Shown here one piece after another: positions 1,569 to 8,832 of a stretch of 8,956 bases of DNA. The DNA is from Paramicrosporidium saccamoebae KSL3 (Eukaryota > Fungi > Cryptomycota): assembly GCA_002794465.1 (NCBI GenBank), contig MTSL01000094.1, positions 1-8,956 of the forward strand. Direction: 5' to 3'. Positions within the stretch are counted from its first letter, which is position 1; each line of letters opens with the position of its first letter. The position numbers and the translations under genes were made by a program. The notes beneath the pieces were generated by a model, which was not told where the DNA came from, ran no database searches, and was given only the letters and a program-made list of their open reading frames with translations.

Positions 1569-1848
1569 TTTATTCAGTCAATCCAACGACCCTTTTATAG
1601 TCACAAATCACATAACTCTCAAATGGTAAAGATCTCATTATCCTTCATCGATTGTCCTGATTATCCCTTCTCCATACTAGGGAACTATTTTCAAAAGCCA
1701 AGCTAATCGGTTTTCTACGTCACAGATATACTCTCTCATAACTATAACTCCAGGCCGATCATTAGGCTCCCTACGTCCATCCAGTCACAACTGAGCTCCT
1801 CACATCCACCCGGCCAATAAGAAAAGAGTTAATTTCCCCAGAGGTGCA

Positions 1849-3442
1849 ATGGGATTGTTTTCATCCGAGATAGAAAGTCTTATTGTCGAAGCCACCTCTG
1901 AATACCTTCCGGCCGCGCAGGAGGACCTTGGAAAGAATTTAGAAATTTGCGACCTCATCAAGAGCCGCCAAGTGCCCTCCAAGACGGCCATGCGAGCCCT
2001 CAAGGATCGTCTCCATCATCGGAACCCCAATGTCCAACTCCTCGCCCTTTCCGTACGCCCATTGATTAGTTGTAATATGCAGATAGTTGACCGACACGTG
2101 TGTTAAAAACACGGGAACCGTCTTCCTCCGGGAATTGGCATCTCGCGAATTTGTCGACGTCATCGTCGAGTTGTGTCGAGAGGGAGAATTTGCAGTGGCA
2201 AAGAAAAGTCGGGACCTGCTGCAGCAATGGGCGCAGCTATTGGGCGGAGAAGAAGGATTGCAGTACATGCGCGCTGCTTATGAACAATCTAAGCGCGAAG
2301 GAATTGAGTACCCACCGGCCCCACGCGCCATTCCCGCGTCCATTGTGACGACGGAAGCGCCACCCGAGTGGACCGACAGTGCGGTATGTGTGCGATGCAA
2401 CGTGCAATTCGGCATTATGTTGCGGAAACACCACTGCAGACGATGCGGAAAGACCTTTTGTCAAGACTGTTCGGGGAAGGAAATTGCTCTGCCCGAATTG
2501 GGATTGTATGATGAAGTGCGTGTTTGCGAAAGCTGTTTCGCAGACAAGTTTACTGAACGGACTAGCACGAGAGGATCAAAGGATAACATTCCACAGCCCG
2601 GATCTGCAAACCCTCCAGATGGTACATACGAGGATGACATGGAAAAGGCCATTAGACTTAGTTTGCAGGAAACACAGCTGCCTAGGCCAGTAGCGGCAGC
2701 CAGGCCCAAAGAAGATGCCTATGATGAAGACGCAGCATTAGCGGCTGCCATTGCAGCATCGTTGCAAGAAACTCGACCAGAAGTTCGGAATGAAATTCGG
2801 ACCGAAATTCGGAATGGAAGTCAGAATGAAAGTCGGGATGAAACTCACCCATCATCTCCTGCCATCTACTCAACTGTTCCCAACTCTGCGCCATCCTATG
2901 CACCAATCCAACCACCCGTTACGCCAGTAATGTTAATCACACCAATTGAGAGGGAAAATGTGCAATTGTTTTCGGAGCTTCTGAACCGAATGGGTCCACA
3001 GGATGAAGAATTGGGTGAGCCGCAATTCTTACAACTCGCAAACAACATGATCCAGCTGCGGGACCGTCTGCAAGCAGCCCTGTCCCGTGCCGACTGTCCT
3101 GCCGACGTATCTCGCATCACTTCCATCCTCGATACTGCCCTGCTCATCTATGAGCGTCTCTCAGCCGAATCATACAGTCCACCTAATCTGGCCACCCTTC
3201 CTACGGCTCCCCACAGCGAGACGGGCTCCATTACTTACGTCGACACTAGTAAGCCCAGTGCCCCATTGGCCCAGCCGCCGCCAGCCGAGGTGGTTCCAGT
3301 ACTGCGTCCCCTGCCGATGAGGAGGAAGGAGGAGGATGTCATGCTGATTCCCGATTTGGATGTAGAGGATATGCCCCAACCCGAGCCACGGGAGGATCCC
3401 TTAGCAGAACTGGTTGATGACGCACCGCTTATTCAATTGTAA
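1849..3442 (+). CDS. VPS27: ESCRT-0 subunit Vps27/Hrs, join(1849..2052,2087..3442), 519 aa
   Basis: VHS domain (ATSEYLP, NPNVQLLALS|LTDTCVKN, EFVD); FYVE finger (W-D, CxxC, RKHHCRRCG, VRVCESC; about 2369-2543); two UIMs (EDDMEKAIRLSLQE, EDAALAAAIAASLQE); GAT-like helix (ERENVQLFSELL); C-terminal clathrin-box-like LIQL. Confidence 0.95.
2053..2086 (+). other. Spliceosomal intron in VPS27, 34 nt, phase 0
   Basis: GTACGC...TGTAATATGCAGATAG; only the TAG acceptor at 2084-2086 gives an open frame and the VHS motif LLALS|LTDTCVKN. Confidence 0.88.
2768..2851 (+). repeat. Coding 12-nt minisatellite inside VPS27 (7 degenerate units)
   Basis: GAAACTCGACCA GAAGTTCGGAAT GAAATTCGGACC GAAATTCGGAAT GGAAGTCAGAAT GAAAGTCGGGAT GAAACTCACCCA, encoding ETRP EVRN EIRT EIRN GSQN ESRD ETHP. 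Confidence 0.8.
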
Positions 3443-3700
3443 ATAAACGAGAACTGCTTGATTTATTGTCACTAGGTTGTGTAGAGCGGGAGTTTTCCGA
3501 GGGCGTAAATCAATAACAGGCTGCTGATTACTTTTACTATTGCCATTGGATCCGATGCAAACAACGTGAATGAGCGAGAACTGCTTAATCTTTCTGAAGG
3601 CATGAATAAATAAATGTCCCTTGATTGCCTTTTTACTATTCTATTGCCGTTGGATTAAATGCAAACAGCGCAAATGAACAAGAACTGCTTGATTTATTTC
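3439..3700. repeat. Degenerate direct repeats in the convergent VPS27/PRE10 spacer (two long copies, one partial)
   Basis: 3538-3589 vs 3642-3693: 42/52 identical, ungapped, offset 104. 3439-3467 vs 3670-3698: 26/29 identical. The shared core AGAACTGCTT occurs at 3450, 3577 and 3681. Confidence 0.9.
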
Positions 3701-3718
3701 CATTAGATTACATGCGGA

Positions 3719-4533
3719 TTAGTCATAGTCCATACGGGCGGCGAGGTTCTCTTTGGCAACACGGATGGCCGCCTCCAGCACCTCCTTGGGCACAATCTGA
3801 TGTTGGTTATTCGACTCGGGTCCAATCCAACTCATCTCCAACTCAAAATCCTTGTCCTTGGCCGGGTCATGCGCCAAATAGATGATTTTGGCGGCCTCCA
3901 CGACGGCCTGGGACACGGTCATGCTGTCCAGGTCGAGTTTTTCAATTTCCGTCTTGGCCGTCTGTCGTCCCTTTCCTGCAGCACACCCGCGATATCCCCA
4001 ACACACGCCCGACGGCTCAACCATGTAAAGATGGGAGCCATCCTCATCCACCGCAGCCATCAGCAAATTGCCACAGAATGGCCTCACACTGCCATAGAGC
4101 GTATAGGCCTGCACATACATGGCCAGGCGGTCGGCAAGCATTGGTCCTGGGATGCCAGTGGCAAAGTTTTCCCGATGGGAGGCAGATTCCTCACGGGCCC
4201 GCAGAGCGAGAGCACGACAATCGGCTGCCAGTCCAGCACCGACGACACCGGCATGCAACTCGACGGTATGGATGCGTCGGTTTGCTCCGGCCTTGAGAAG
4301 ACGCGAATGAATTGGTTTTTCTACCGCCAGAACAACGCCGTCCTTGACCTTGAGTCCAATGGTGGTTCTACACATTATGGCCCATTCTGTGAATACCCCG
4401 AGTTTTCAACAGCCTTGGAGGCATATTCGACCTGAAAGATGCGTCCATCGGGCGAAAAGGTGGTGGTGCTCAAGTCGTACTACAGAGAATGACAAAGGTT
4501 GAATGGAAGTACTCCTGCGCCAATGGATGCCAT
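3719..4533 (-). CDS. PRE10: 20S proteasome alpha-7 subunit (PSMA3/Pre10), complement(join(3719..4367,4397..4479,4513..4533)), 250 aa
   Basis: The spliced N-terminus MASIGAG|[28 protein letters not shown]|[17 protein letters not shown] is the alpha-7 signature; also [26 protein letters not shown] and [11 protein letters not shown]. Confidence 0.96.
4368..4396 (-). other. PRE10 intron 2, 29 nt, phase 2
   Basis: GTATTCACAGAATGGGCCATAATGTGTAG on the minus strand; excision gives ENSG|TTIG. Confidence 0.92.
4480..4512 (-). other. PRE10 intron 1, 33 nt, phase 0
   Basis: GTACTTCCATTCAACCTTTGTCATTCTCTGTAG on the minus strand; excision gives SIGAG|YDLS. Confidence 0.92.
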
Positions 4534-4562
4534 ATTGTGGGAGGACGGGGGTGGCAAGGACT
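4534..4562. promoter_or_regulatory. 29-bp spacer between divergent PRE10 and TAF2 start codons; contains PACE-like GGTGGCAAG (4550-4558)
   Basis: ATTGTGGGAGGACGGGGGTGGCAAGGACT lies between CAT (4531-4533) and ATG (4563-4565). The motif matches the Rpn4 site GGTGGCAAA at 8/9. Regulatory function is inferred. Confidence 0.55.
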
Positions 4563-7500
4563 ATGGAGGAGCCCGCAGATATCATACGACAAGATCCTCG
4601 CGGATACTTTCCACGTACCCTTTGTTATAAGGAATAACACATAGTTCATCAAAGGGTCACTTTGCGCATCCACCCGGTCGAGAAAGGGGTCAGTGCCGTC
4701 TCGGATATCCGCATTCAATGCACTGACAGCAGTCTGACCACCCTAAGTCTGCACGCACGTTGCATTGATATACAGACGGTTAGCATAGACGGAAATGCGG
4801 CCGAATATACTTTGGAAAGGGTCGCTTTGGACACGTTGGTCCCTGAGGGAGTGACCGTCGGCGCACCAAGCGAGCTCATCCAGTATCCCAACCGTCTTCG
4901 CCAGGAAATCTTGAATTCTCGGGACCGGAGTGAACTCAAAGTCACCCTTCCAACTGTCCGGGCTGGGGAGGAGATTGTCCTGCGGATTGAATATGAGATG
5001 AAGCTGTCCTTTTTGGCACGCATGGATGGCGAGGAGACGAGGTATTTCCAGGTGCATGCGACTGGGATGGACGGAATGGGTCGACATTGGCTTCCGTGTT
5101 TCGAAGACGATCCCATTCTGTGGGACTTTGAGTACCGCATCAGCACGGATAAAATTCCGTCCTTGTTAGCCACCCAGAACATCCATGTGGCCAGTTCCGG
5201 AGCGCTTTGTCAACAATTTTTTCTTCCCGAGGAGAATACCAAAGTGCTGCAATTCAAGCTTGATGTGCTTACTCCCCCGAGAAATGTGGGCTTTGTTGCA
5301 GGTATTTTTGAGATGGTGCGGGTGCCAGCAGCGCCTTTTGCAGCGGCCTTTTGTCCGCTGGGCATGGCAGCCAAACTGACACTGTCAGTAGAGTTTCTGT
5401 CTCGCGCCTTTGGATACATTAATTGGTATCTGACCACCACATTTCCATATCCATCGTATTACTGCGTGTTCCTGCGCGAGGCCTTTGCCGCATCTGAATC
5501 GGCCTCGGTGGCTAATATCTCTCTGTTCAGCACATTGGCCTTATTCAACAATACCATTATCGATCAGACCCTAAAGACTCGTAGTCTCATCAGTGCTGCT
5601 CTTGCCGAGCAATACTTTGGTGTTCGTCTGAGGGCCGAGGGGAGCGCCAGTCGATGGCTAACCCAAGGAATCAGTGGATTCCTGGCACGACACATGTTGC
5701 GTATCTTTCACGGAAACAATGATTTCCGTTATAATTTGAAAAAGGCCATGGCAACGCTACTTGCAGTTGACACGGGACACGGTCCGATTGTTGACGCTCC
5801 CGATGTATTTGCTAATCCCGCCGACGAAGATTGGCTGAGACTAAAGTCCTGTCTAACAATGATTGTGTTTGAGCATCGTTTGGAAAAGGGCGCTTTGCAA
5901 AAGGTCAGCGCTTCTTGTCCACTAATTGGTTAGATTTTGGCCCATATTTGGAGCGAGTTTCTTGAGGATCGACTGCCAGGTGGAGTGTTAGGAACGGGCG
6001 TCTTCTTGAAGTTGGCCAAGAAGATTAGCGGAAAGGATATGCGATCCTTTGCGGACCAATGGATCTTTTCAGCGGGATGTCCAGTGTTCAGTTGCACATT
6101 CTCCTTCAACCGTAAACGGTCGACCATTGAAGTGGATGTGAAGCAGTCCACTCCCAACCATCCACAACGAAAAGTGGCTGGCACATTGCTCATCCGCGTC
6201 CACGAGGTCGACGGAGTCTTTGACCATTCAGTGCACATTGACGACTTTTCGCATCATTTCGAGCTCCCAGTTCATGCCAAAGCCAAGAAGATTAAAAAGA
6301 AAAAGCGTCTACTGATGCCAGATCAGCCTGAGCCTGCAGTAGACACTAAGGAAGAGGAGGAAGACACGTTTGTGTCGCCGTTGTCATGGATCCGACTTGA
6401 CCCGGAGATGGAATGGATTGCGTCATTGGAGCTGCATCAGCCCGACTTTATGCTCGTGGAGCAGCTGCAAAACGACCGGGACGTGATTGCCCAACACGAG
6501 GCCATTGAGAGTCTGTGTCGTCAGCCCTCTGATACGGTGATTGAAGCATTGGAACGGATTCTGAATGATCCCAAATGTTTCTATCGGATCCGTATTGAGG
6601 CGGCGGAGGGATTGGCCGGATGTGCTCCCAACCCGGAAACCCATTTGGGAGGACTCAAGTTGATCTCTTTCTATAACAAAGGCTTTGCACTGCAATCACT
6701 GGAGACGGTGGTGGTGCCGGTGCCCAAGACTAACAACTTTGAGGCGCTGCAGAGCTATTTTATCCAATCCTCCTTGGCGGGGGCAATGGCCAAGATCCGC
6801 ACCAAGAACGGTACGTTAATGGAGCTGGTGGGTCAGATTCTACTGAATATGCTGCGTTTCAATGACAATGCGGGGAACATGTACAGCGACAATTACTATG
6901 TCGTCTCGCTGTTACGGGCTATGTTGGAGCATCTGCGGGTGCGACGTGAGACTGATTTGCCCACTGAACGGTTACTACGCGAATTTGTCAAAGAGTTGGA
7001 CCGCTACGCCATTGTGGAAAAGATTCAGCCATACTATCACAATACGGTAATGGTTACCATCCTGGATGTATGGCGTGAATTGCGACTAATGGGAATGACC
7101 CATTCCACAGCCATTGTCTGTCCCGAAGTCTTACTGAAGGAGGGAAATTTTGTAAGTGTTCGTCTGGCTGCGCTGGAATATCTGCTGAGTACAGAAGAGT
7201 TGCTGTCCGACTCGATCTGCGAGTCTCTACAGAGTTTATTGACGGGCAATCGAGGGATCCGGGCTGCAACGCTGGACAGGCTGCTTCGAATAACACCAAA
7301 GTCCATTTCCTGTCGCACCGACTTTAACGCCAAAAAGGAGTTCCTGCTTGATCTGCTTAGTCAGATGGATCTGGCCTATGTTTCGCAGAGCGTGCAATAT
7401 CTATACTTTGTGGGACGACTCATTGAAACGGCGACGTTGGACCGTCCGACTGAGAGCGGACGTATTTCGTTGCGGATTGCGCTGCCTGTTGAACACGAAC

Positions 7501-8831
7501 TCAGCTCGGCAGATGAACATGTGGGGACGGTGGGCGAAGAGGAGCCTGATTGGTATTTGGAGGTGGGTGGGGAGCAGGGCTCCCGGGTCCGTCCCAGTGT
7601 GACTCCCAAACTACGACTTGCCATGCCCGATTCCTCTCCAACAGGAAAACTTGCAGCGGTAGTACAGGGCATCTGGAGCAACTTTGATAGTTTCCCCTTT
7701 CGCTATCCCGTCGATCCGTCAGTGGTGGGTTATTACGACGTCATTAAGAACCCCGTGGATCTGAGCACAATCCAAGATCGACTGCGCAAGGACATTATCT
7801 CTTCTGTAGCACAACTCTGTGAGGATCTGCGGCTAATGTTTGATAACTGCTTCCTGTTCAATCTGCCCGAATCGCTTATTTATGAGCAGGCCAAGCGACT
7901 GCGTAGTCACGCTTTGAAAGAATTTCGTCGCGTCTTTCCCCTTCAGTTTAAGGAGATTAGGGCCGTCTTAATGACCAAGGAACCTGTGGTCATTATCCCC
8001 GATATCATTGCCGACGTTGTTCCCGATGTCGTGGCACGACCTCCCAAAGTCCCCAAGACGCCGGAATTGTCACTAACAGAACGCATGGAGCGGGTTTTGG
8101 AAAAGACGCGCAGCCATCCCTATGCATTCTGGTTCCTGACGCCAGTGGATCCCGTTGCTCTCAATATTCCCACCTATCCAGAGATTGTCACCGAGCCTAT
8201 GGATTTGGGTACTCTTGAACAGCGGCTTCGTGCCGGCGACTTTGCCGACAATCCGAGAGAATTTGTTCGATTGCTTGATATAATCTTTGTCAATTGCACC
8301 ACCTTTAATCCTGTCAACACAGTGGTGCACCAGAATGCTCTGCAGATGCGCACGGCTGCACAAAAACTGGTGAAAAAGCTGTTACCCGAGACAACTACGA
8401 CCGAAAGTGTGCCCAAACTCAAGCTCACTCTCAGTCCCAAAAAGTCTGCTGAGACGGGCGGGCTAAAGCTAAAGTTGACGCTGCCTCCAAGGGACGACTC
8501 CTGGTATGCATCGGCACAAAAAATTCTCGATCAGGTGAGCGCCCATGAATTTGCCATCCCCTTCCTCCAGCCCGTTGATCCCGTCCTCCTTAATCTGCCC
8601 TCTTATCCGCGCATCATTAAGAATCCCATGGATCTCTCCACCATCCGCGCTAAACTCTCCTCTGCCTCCTACACGAGGGCCACCGAGATGCATCGCGACT
8701 TTAAATTAATGTTTTCCAATTGCTATCGGTTCAATGGACGGACCGCACCGATTTCAGAGGCCGCAAAGATATTAGAATCTTTTTACGACTCTCTCTATCT
8801 CCAATGTATACATGGTGTTTCTGATGAATAA
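4563..8831 (+). CDS. TAF2: TFIID subunit 2 (M1-aminopeptidase-like pseudoenzyme) with three C-terminal bromodomains, join(4563..4614,4645..5903,5934..8831), 1402 aa
   Basis: TAF2-like segments: YFPLHQRVTLRI, RHWLPCFED, LAEQYFG, WLTQGISGFL, FADQWIFSAGCP, LLIRVHEVDGVFDH, WIRLDPEMEW, DRDVIAQHEAI, FYRIRIEAA, YSDNYY, YHNTV. Basic patch KAKKIKKKKR is a probable NLS. Three bromodomains follow in the same ORF. The start at 4563 depends on intron 4615-4644. Confidence 0.92.
4615..4644 (+). other. TAF2 intron 1, 30 nt, phase 1
   Basis: GTACCCTTTGTTATAAGGAATAACACATAG; contains an in-frame TAA. Excision links ATG 4563 to the ATG-less ORF at 4662. Confidence 0.85.
5904..5933 (+). other. TAF2 intron 2, 30 nt, phase 0
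   Basis: GTCAGCGCTTCTTGTCCACTAATTGGTTAG, with a CTAAT branch site; excision joins ALQK|ILAHIW. Confidence 0.92.
7647..7931 (+). other. Bromodomain 1 of TAF2 (approximate bounds)
   Basis: PFRYPVDP..GYYDVIKNPVDLSTIQDRL...DLRLMFDNCFLFN; conserved Asn codon at 7860-7862. Confidence 0.92.
8082..8381 (+). other. Bromodomain 2 of TAF2 (approximate bounds)
   Basis: WFLTPVDPVALNIPTYPEIVTEPMDLGTLEQRL...IFVNCTTFN; conserved Asn codon at 8307-8309. Confidence 0.92.
8502..8801 (+). other. Bromodomain 3 of TAF2 (approximate bounds)
   Basis: PFLQPVDPVLLNLPSYPRIIKNPMDLSTIRAKL...DFKLMFSNCYRFN; conserved Asn codon at 8733-8735. Confidence 0.93.
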
Positions 8832-8832
8832 A
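8827..8832 (+). terminator. Putative poly(A) signal AATAAA overlapping the TAF2 last codon and stop
   Basis: GAA TAA A; the same arrangement occurs at FUR1 (290-295) and VPS27 (3442-3447). Confidence 0.55.

Follow-up and report, generated by a model that had tools for sequence, protein, structure and literature searches.

In the microsporidian Encephalitozoon cuniculi, rapid amplification of cDNA ends shows 5′ untranslated regions of fewer than 7 nt. A signal resembling CCC, or in some cases GGG, directly precedes the ATG in most genes, and S16 and L13, which are arranged head to head, lie 35 bp apart (PMC2803860); in Microsporidia this CCC/GGG-like signal is in routine use for calling start codons (PMC10815200). 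Here we describe a comparable arrangement in Paramicrosporidium saccamoebae KSL3 (Rozellomycota), in which the gene for the proteasome alpha7 subunit, PRE10, and the gene for TAF2 are transcribed away from each other with their start codons separated by 29 bp. Both lie on contig MTSL01000094.1 of assembly GCA_002794465.1, and the contig was analysed over its whole length of 8,956 bp (the window). The genome of P. saccamoebae is 7.3 Mb with 3,750 predicted genes, and phylogenetically the species is sister to Microsporidia (PMC5701793). It lives as an intranuclear parasite of Saccamoeba, and we found nothing in the literature on Paramicrosporidium promoters, introns, or start sites.

Bidirectional promoters of yeast, animals, and plants resemble this locus in that two conserved housekeeping genes diverge from a shared, TATA-less, G+C-rich region and the pairing is evolutionarily conserved. 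In those systems, however, the start sites are typically ~100 to 1,000 bp apart and two separate preinitiation complexes flank one nucleosome-free region, whereas the PRE10/TAF2 pair leaves just 29 bp between the start codons themselves, which forces the complexes to overlap. With Microsporidia, its sister lineage, the locus shares a reduced parasite genome, divergent genes separated by a few tens of base pairs, runs of C on one strand and of G on the other no more than 20 nt from the start codons, the lack of a TATA box, and AATAAA signals overlapping or just after stop codons. It differs in having spliceosomal introns right after the tiny first exons of both genes, in the lack of the AAATTT-like element described upstream of the C/G run in ribosomal protein genes, and in tandem spacers of 175 to 421 bp, which are much longer than in E. 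cuniculi; moreover, the organism belongs to Rozellomycota rather than to Microsporidia proper, and its leaders are bounded here only by upstream ATGs.

The PRE10/TAF2 pair looks best explained as promoter compaction of the kind already documented in the sister group, and not as a new mechanism. The novelty lies in the lineage, in the pairing of compaction with tiny 5′ exons and introns of 29 to 33 nt, and in a candidate recurring motif. Extreme promoter compaction would then predate, or run parallel to, Microsporidia proper, in a lineage of Rozellomycota whose genes still have many very small spliceosomal introns, and the locus with its candidate motif would offer a concrete, conserved case for bidirectional initiation by RNA polymerase II in less than the space of one preinitiation complex.

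Gene models of the divergent pair

Relatives were taken from public assemblies as homologous contigs found in homology searches and labelled L001 to L017, and the PRE10 and TAF2 start codons were located in them lineage by lineage; L012/L013, L001/L002, L004/L005/L006/L014, and L010/L011 were each grouped as one lineage. The closest relative is L015, with 89.6% overall DNA identity to the window, and the gene order UPRT-MCAT-VPS27-PRE10(−)-TAF2(+) is common to the window and the relatives' contigs.

PRE10 occupies three exons on the minus strand. Exon 1 (4533..4513) is 21 nt long, starts with the ATG at 4533..4531, and encodes MASIGAG; it is followed by intron 1 (4512..4480, 33 nt), in which read-through meets a stop codon, and by exon 2 (4397..4479), which contains the Pfam Proteasome_A_N match and is conserved in all relatives. 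Read from 4533, the minus strand gives ATGGCATCCATTGGCGCAGGA, then the intron GTACTT...TGTAG, then TACGACTTG. Intron 2 (4396..4368; 29 nt, GTATTC...TGTAG), also present in L015, must be removed to link ...AVENSG with TTIGLKV, and exon 3 (3719..4367), supported by its open reading frame, the splice model, and the Pfam Proteasome match, runs to the stop codon. The spliced product is 250 aa long, matches Proteasome_A_N at residues 8 to 30 and Proteasome at residues 31 to 216, and aligns over its full length (100%) with 250-aa fungal proteins named alpha7, PRE10, or PSMA3. Exon 1 reads MASIGAG or MASEG in every lineage (L012, L010, L008, L001, and L004) and is identical in L015; intron 1 varies from 33 to 50 nt across lineages while the adjoining coding sequence is kept. 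The preliminary description of this DNA had called the PRE10 start firm from homology, and to the full-length alignment can be added an in-frame TAG immediately 5′ of the ATG (4562–4564, minus strand), which excludes a longer N-terminus. A homology search of the public protein collection for spliced PRE10 returned only an unspliced 218-aa form. A second member of the PRE10 cluster, considered as a possible cDNA, was rejected, as it comes from the genomic sequence of a relative with 90% identity.

TAF2, on the plus strand, begins with a 52-nt exon (4563..4614) that encodes MEEPADIIRQDPRGYFP plus 1 nt, a peptide conserved in L015, L003, and L009. Intron 1 (4615..4644; 30 nt, GTACCC...CATAG) is in phase 1, and read-through meets a stop codon at 4638. 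Exon 2 (4645..5903) matches the human and Komagataella TAF2 structures, a second 30-nt intron (5904..5933) follows from the splice model, and exon 3 (5934..8831) contains an Ig-like domain, a TPR/HEAT region, and three bromodomains. The 1,402-aa product has Pfam matches to TAF2_3rd, TPR_TAF2_C, and, three times, Bromodomain. The exon-1 peptide MEE...QDPRGYxP|LHQ is kept in relatives with a phase-1 intron at the same position: every relative's TAF2 begins M-E/D/G, exon 1 ends 1 nt into the codon preceding HQK/HQR, and the intron, 30 to 59 nt long, interrupts the same codon in phase 1 in all of them. Conservation of this peptide, including the DPRGY motif common to the window, L015, L003, and L009, indicates that exon 1 is coding and spliced and supports the start at 4563; where measured, the N-terminal proteins of different lineages are 47 to 60% identical. 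Both start codons, PRE10 at 4533 and TAF2 at 4563, have A at −3 and G at +4.

The main structural proposals of the preliminary description are thereby borne out. Its identification of the two genes agrees with the Pfam matches, the full-length alpha7 alignment, and the TAF2 structure matches; its first exons of 21 and 52 nt, each followed by an intron, are backed by homology and recur in six other related lineages; splicing of 4615–4644 fits both the read-through stop and the phase-1 intron shared by all relatives; and the 29-bp distance between start codons holds, the gap being 4534–4562.

The three C-terminal bromodomains lie in one reading frame with TAF2 (window 7650–8831), and this arrangement is present in all relatives (L001 9292–12237, L004 2867–5746, L009 2355–5606, and L012 1264–5430), including ones only ~31% identical (the distant L016, 4726–5915, and L017, 10910–13420). 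Bromodomains associated with TFIID are carried by TAF1 in animals and by Bdf1 in yeast.

The deposited annotation of P. saccamoebae, built with MAKER and with Augustus trained on Rhizopus, differs at both genes. Its PRE10 is the last exon only (3719..4375, 218 aa), with the first 32 residues lost, and its TAF2 starts at 4489, inside PRE10 intron 1, giving 1,377 aa instead of 1,402. Introns of 29 to 33 nt seem to have been missed by the Rhizopus-trained predictor, and the predicted models used here, which rest on cross-species evidence, correct two public ones. The public models of this genome miss such introns and tiny first exons; re-annotating the whole genome would alter both the N-termini and the statistics of intergenic regions. 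The simplest reconstruction of a 1,377-aa TAF2 (4489–4550, 4730–5903, 5934–8831) has no match in the public collection and is not the deposited structure. All four introns seen (4368–4396, 4480–4512, 4615–4644, and 5904–5933) are 29 to 33 nt long, start with GTA or GTC, end with TAG, and have a YTRAY-like box ~9 to 11 nt before the 3′ splice site; orthologous introns measure 30 to 59 nt.

The spacer, its conservation, and a recurring motif

The putative shared bidirectional core promoter is the 29-bp spacer itself, ATTGTGGGAGGACGGGGGTGGCAAGGACT (4534..4562). As the preliminary description noted, it is G-rich on one strand (4539..4559) and holds no TATA box. Seven lineages retain the head-to-head pair, and the distance from ATG to ATG ranges from 24 to 69 bp: 29 bp in the window and in L015; 51 bp in L012/L013; 49 bp in L001/L002 and likewise in L004/L005/L006/L014; 65 bp in L008, a G+C-rich species; and 24 or 69 bp in L010/L011, depending on the choice of in-frame ATG. 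Two genuine coding genes stand head to head, with ATGs 29 bp apart and no other gene between them, in a conserved arrangement. The pairing is absent in L009, where no PRE10 lies within 685 bp upstream of TAF2. Among the distant relatives found by searching with the TAF2 core (~31% identity), L017 has no PRE10 beside TAF2 and L016 has nothing annotated upstream of it.

Between the window and L015, 27 of the 29 spacer positions are identical, compared with 78 of 100 intron positions and 74% of third codon positions; the difference is suggestive only of sequence constraint on the spacer (29 sites; binomial P = 0.03, Fisher P = 0.10). Three further elements at or beside the spacer were considered and set aside. 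The TATA-like TTATAA in TAF2 intron 1 is already gone in L015, and a CCAAT in the antisense of PRE10 exon 1 only reflects the S-I-G codons and is not present in L001, L004, or L010. An imperfect 20-nt inverted repeat (4489–4508 / 4609–4628, 75% complementary) flanks the promoter, its first arm lying within PRE10 intron 1 and its second where TAF2 intron 1 begins. Its core, CCTTTGT(C/T)AT, resembles an HMG-box site and is kept in L015, but in other relatives it is present only loosely or in part, and the repeat is probably due to chance.

Other divergent pairs in the relatives are similarly tight. DTW and NADK are separated by 11 or 29 bp in L001 (1200–1228) and by 59 bp in L012 (11436–11494), and the NUDIX and MCAT start codons are 62 bp apart in L008 (1588–1649). 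Elsewhere in the window, the tandem spacers measure 175 and 421 bp and the convergent one 276 bp. Consistently, then, it is the divergent spacers that are shortest, the opposite of what a need for two independent promoters would give. A spacer of 29 bp is not exceptional for the clade, and tight divergent pairs are general in Paramicrosporidium-like lineages.

Viewed from each start codon, the spacer presents the kind of run that marks microsporidian genes. The C-run CCCCCGTCCTCCC lies at −23 to −11 from the PRE10 ATG, and GGGGG lies at −16 to −12 from the TAF2 ATG, so that a CCC- or GGG-like run stands within ~15 to 20 nt upstream of both. Within the spacer we delimit a candidate GGG-/CCC-like promoter-proximal motif at 4544..4551, GACGGGGG on the plus strand and CCCCCGTC on the PRE10 strand. 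When every 6- to 8-mer of the window spacer (69 k-mers) was compared with nine other divergent spacers, GACGGGG/CCCCGTC recurred in three of the nine against 0.10 expected (P = 1.5 × 10⁻⁴; ~0.01 after correction), namely in those of L012 PRE10/TAF2, L001 DTW/NADK, and L008 NUDIX/MCAT; the latter two are among the tight pairs listed above. In this small sample the motif is always 0 to 17 nt from a start codon.

A proposed compact shared promoter and its alternatives

The preliminary description judged the gap too small for two independent preinitiation complexes, and we agree. Our preferred reading, to which we give a probability of about 55%, is that the 29 bp and the flanking first exons form one compact, TATA-less bidirectional promoter in a reduced genome. 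Transcription of both genes would begin within the spacer or at its edges, with leaders from a few up to a few tens of nucleotides long, and the strand-asymmetric tract, C-rich on the PRE10 strand (CCACCCCCGTCCTCCCACAAT|ATG) and G-rich on the TAF2 strand, would act as the promoter-proximal signal. The upstream half of each preinitiation complex would sit on the partner's first exon, so that the two genes could not be loaded independently and simultaneously on one template; PRE10 and TAF2 would then probably take turns at a single nucleosome-free site. Of this reading, the gene models, the 29-bp gap, the conserved arrangement, and the recurrence of the motif are shown, and where transcription begins, what the motif does, and the taking of turns are what we infer from sequence.

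Upstream ATGs set limits on the leaders. Both the window and L015 have an out-of-frame, overlapping upstream ATG at −40 (4523) on the TAF2 strand and at −52 (4585) on the PRE10 strand, and L001 has one for TAF2 at −20, within the spacer. If ribosomes scan, leaders should be shorter than ~40 nt for TAF2 (<20 nt in L001) and shorter than ~52 nt for PRE10, which would bound the start sites to roughly 4524–4584. Across six independent spacers there are no PRE10-sense ATGs against 2.8 expected (P = 0.05), whereas those in the TAF2 sense, 4 against 5.5 expected, show no depletion, which hints weakly at a PRE10 leader extending over much of the spacer and a shorter one for TAF2. The preliminary description had framed the problem as a choice between leaders of a few nucleotides from one minimal promoter and promoters lying inside the partner gene with overlapping 5′ ends. 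The bounds are compatible with 5′ ends that overlap and with ones that do not, and the choice itself is a false dichotomy, as a leader of any length, even 0 nt, puts the −30 region of either gene inside the first exon of its partner.

Several observations weigh against a compact shared promoter. The start sites are placed from sequence and not from transcript 5′ ends, and the spacer has no AAATTT-like element. L008 lacks the C/G asymmetry and L001 and L010 show it only weakly, ~30 other gene starts in the window and relatives, many of them uncertain, give no obvious enrichment of a CCC run within 30 nt of the ATG, and the motif test depends on the second ATG chosen for L001 DTW. The conservation test on 29 sites is weak, and beyond L015 the spacer cannot be aligned, with only its length staying at or below 69 bp. 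Finally, in L012, L004, and L010 there is no PRE10-sense upstream ATG for at least 140 nt, so that long leaders overlapping TAF2 are equally allowed there.

This last point bears directly on the alternative that the two transcripts overlap, each starting inside the first exon or intron of its partner, so that the mRNAs share tens of complementary 5′ nucleotides and may interfere with each other. We regard this as possible, though doubtful. A gap below the footprint of one preinitiation complex would suit it, as would the lack of PRE10-sense ATGs in any spacer, which is what a PRE10 leader spanning or exceeding the spacer would give; the first exons are 100% (PRE10) and 94% (TAF2) identical to those of L015, and both strands are transcribed at E. 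cuniculi loci (PMC2803860). However, the upstream ATGs at −40 and −20 for TAF2 and at −52 for PRE10 would cripple translation from longer leaders, the first exons show no significant excess of conservation at synonymous sites over other regions, and the TTATAA that might have placed a TATA-like element inside TAF2 is lost even in the closest relative. The geometry would also change if TAF2 initiated at another ATG, either in frame at 4527 or 4503 or at the annotated 4489, producing an antisense coding overlap or a different gap. The frame is indeed open from 4503, with no stop codon between these two ATGs and 4563, and the deposited TAF2 spans 4489..8831 (1,377 aa). Nevertheless we consider such a start improbable and 4563, named as the likeliest ATG in the preliminary description, the better choice: the conserved peptide opens with M-E-E in L015 and L003 and with M-E/D/G in the other relatives, and an upstream extension would merely be the antisense of PRE10 exon 1. 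A at −3 and G at +4 surround 4563, while the contexts of 4527 and 4523 are weak, and the out-of-frame 4523 comes before 4527. As for 4489, it derives from the same Rhizopus-trained MAKER/Augustus annotation that missed both PRE10 5′ exons, and all exon structures found for a 1,377-aa product from there break the conserved N-terminal segment, losing LHQR and in most cases more of LHQRVTLRIHP.

Two further proposals give the spacer sequence a different role from that of a start-proximal signal in a compact promoter. The preliminary description had raised a possible two-tier G-quadruplex on the G-rich strand, which might organise or regulate the bidirectional promoter. A two-tier motif does occur in the window, L015, and L012, and when the window and L015 spacers are folded as RNA in ViennaRNA with the G-quadruplex option on, the minimum-free-energy structures include a two-tier quadruplex. 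No lineage has a three-tier motif, though, with only two runs of three or more G present; two-tier motifs number 40 on both strands of the 8,956-bp window and are missing in four of the seven lineages (L001, L004, L008, and L010), and the G-richness of the spacer is itself lost in L001, L008, and L010. Two-tetrad quadruplexes are marginally stable, the more so within duplex DNA. We therefore reject the quadruplex, now very improbable, and the tract is better read as a microsporidian-like signal close to the start codons. The other proposal concerns GGTGGCAA (4550..4557, plus strand), identical to the 8-mer consensus of the yeast Rpn4 site, the proteasome-associated control element (PACE), which we treat as a lead only. 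This 8-mer is the Rpn4p consensus upstream of yeast proteasome genes, and hemiascomycetes are the only fungi that show enrichment of the site upstream of proteasome genes (PMC526180). Here, as in Saccharomycotina, it stands directly upstream of a proteasome subunit gene, and an Rpn4-like zinc-finger factor might drive PRE10 with TAF2 carried along. The exact 8-mer is present in the window and L015 spacers and, in the opposite orientation, in the L001/L002 spacer, and two of its five independent occurrences in 77 kb lie in PRE10 spacers. Yet it is absent from the orthologous spacers of L004, L012, L008, and L010, in L001 it coincides with GCCACCATGG, the Kozak context for TAF2, and its near-matches number 31 against 16.5 by uniform expectation, a roughly twofold background excess. 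The presence of the site in only some related lineages and in either orientation sets it apart from the known system, which is known only from ascomycetes, and we think control by such a factor unlikely. Were it real, a PACE-type site at PRE10 would extend the Rpn4 proteasome regulon far beyond Ascomycota. Still speculative, and rather unlikely as a whole, is a broader scheme in which GACGGGG/CCCCGTC, set 0 to 17 nt from a start codon, would be a short reusable bidirectional core-promoter element of Paramicrosporidium-like Rozellomycota, an evolutionary forerunner or variant of the microsporidian signal, combined at PRE10 with the PACE-type GGTGGCAA.

Gene ends and repeats in the window

Scans of the window with Rfam and for tRNAs gave no non-coding RNA. 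AATAAA overlaps the stop codons of UPRT (290–295), VPS27 (3442–3447), and TAF2 (8827–8832) and lies ~27 nt downstream of the PRE10 stop codon, a further sign of compaction at gene ends. The convergent spacer between VPS27 and PRE10 (3441–3709) contains direct repeats of 53 nt (81% identity, 104 nt apart) and 38 nt (84%, 231 nt), which end in GAACTGCTTGAT/GAACTGCTTAAT and adjoin the AATAAA of each gene.

Upstream of VPS27, the 421-bp spacer that separates it from MCAT includes a (GAGAA)n microsatellite of ~11 copies (1514–1567). Of the gene starts in the window, only that of VPS27 resembles the microsporidian combination of AAATTT and CCC, with TTAATTTCCCC at −20 to −10 from its ATG (window 1829–1848). 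Within its coding region, a 12/24-nt repeat at 2768–2846 encodes a EIRNEIRTEIRN tract.

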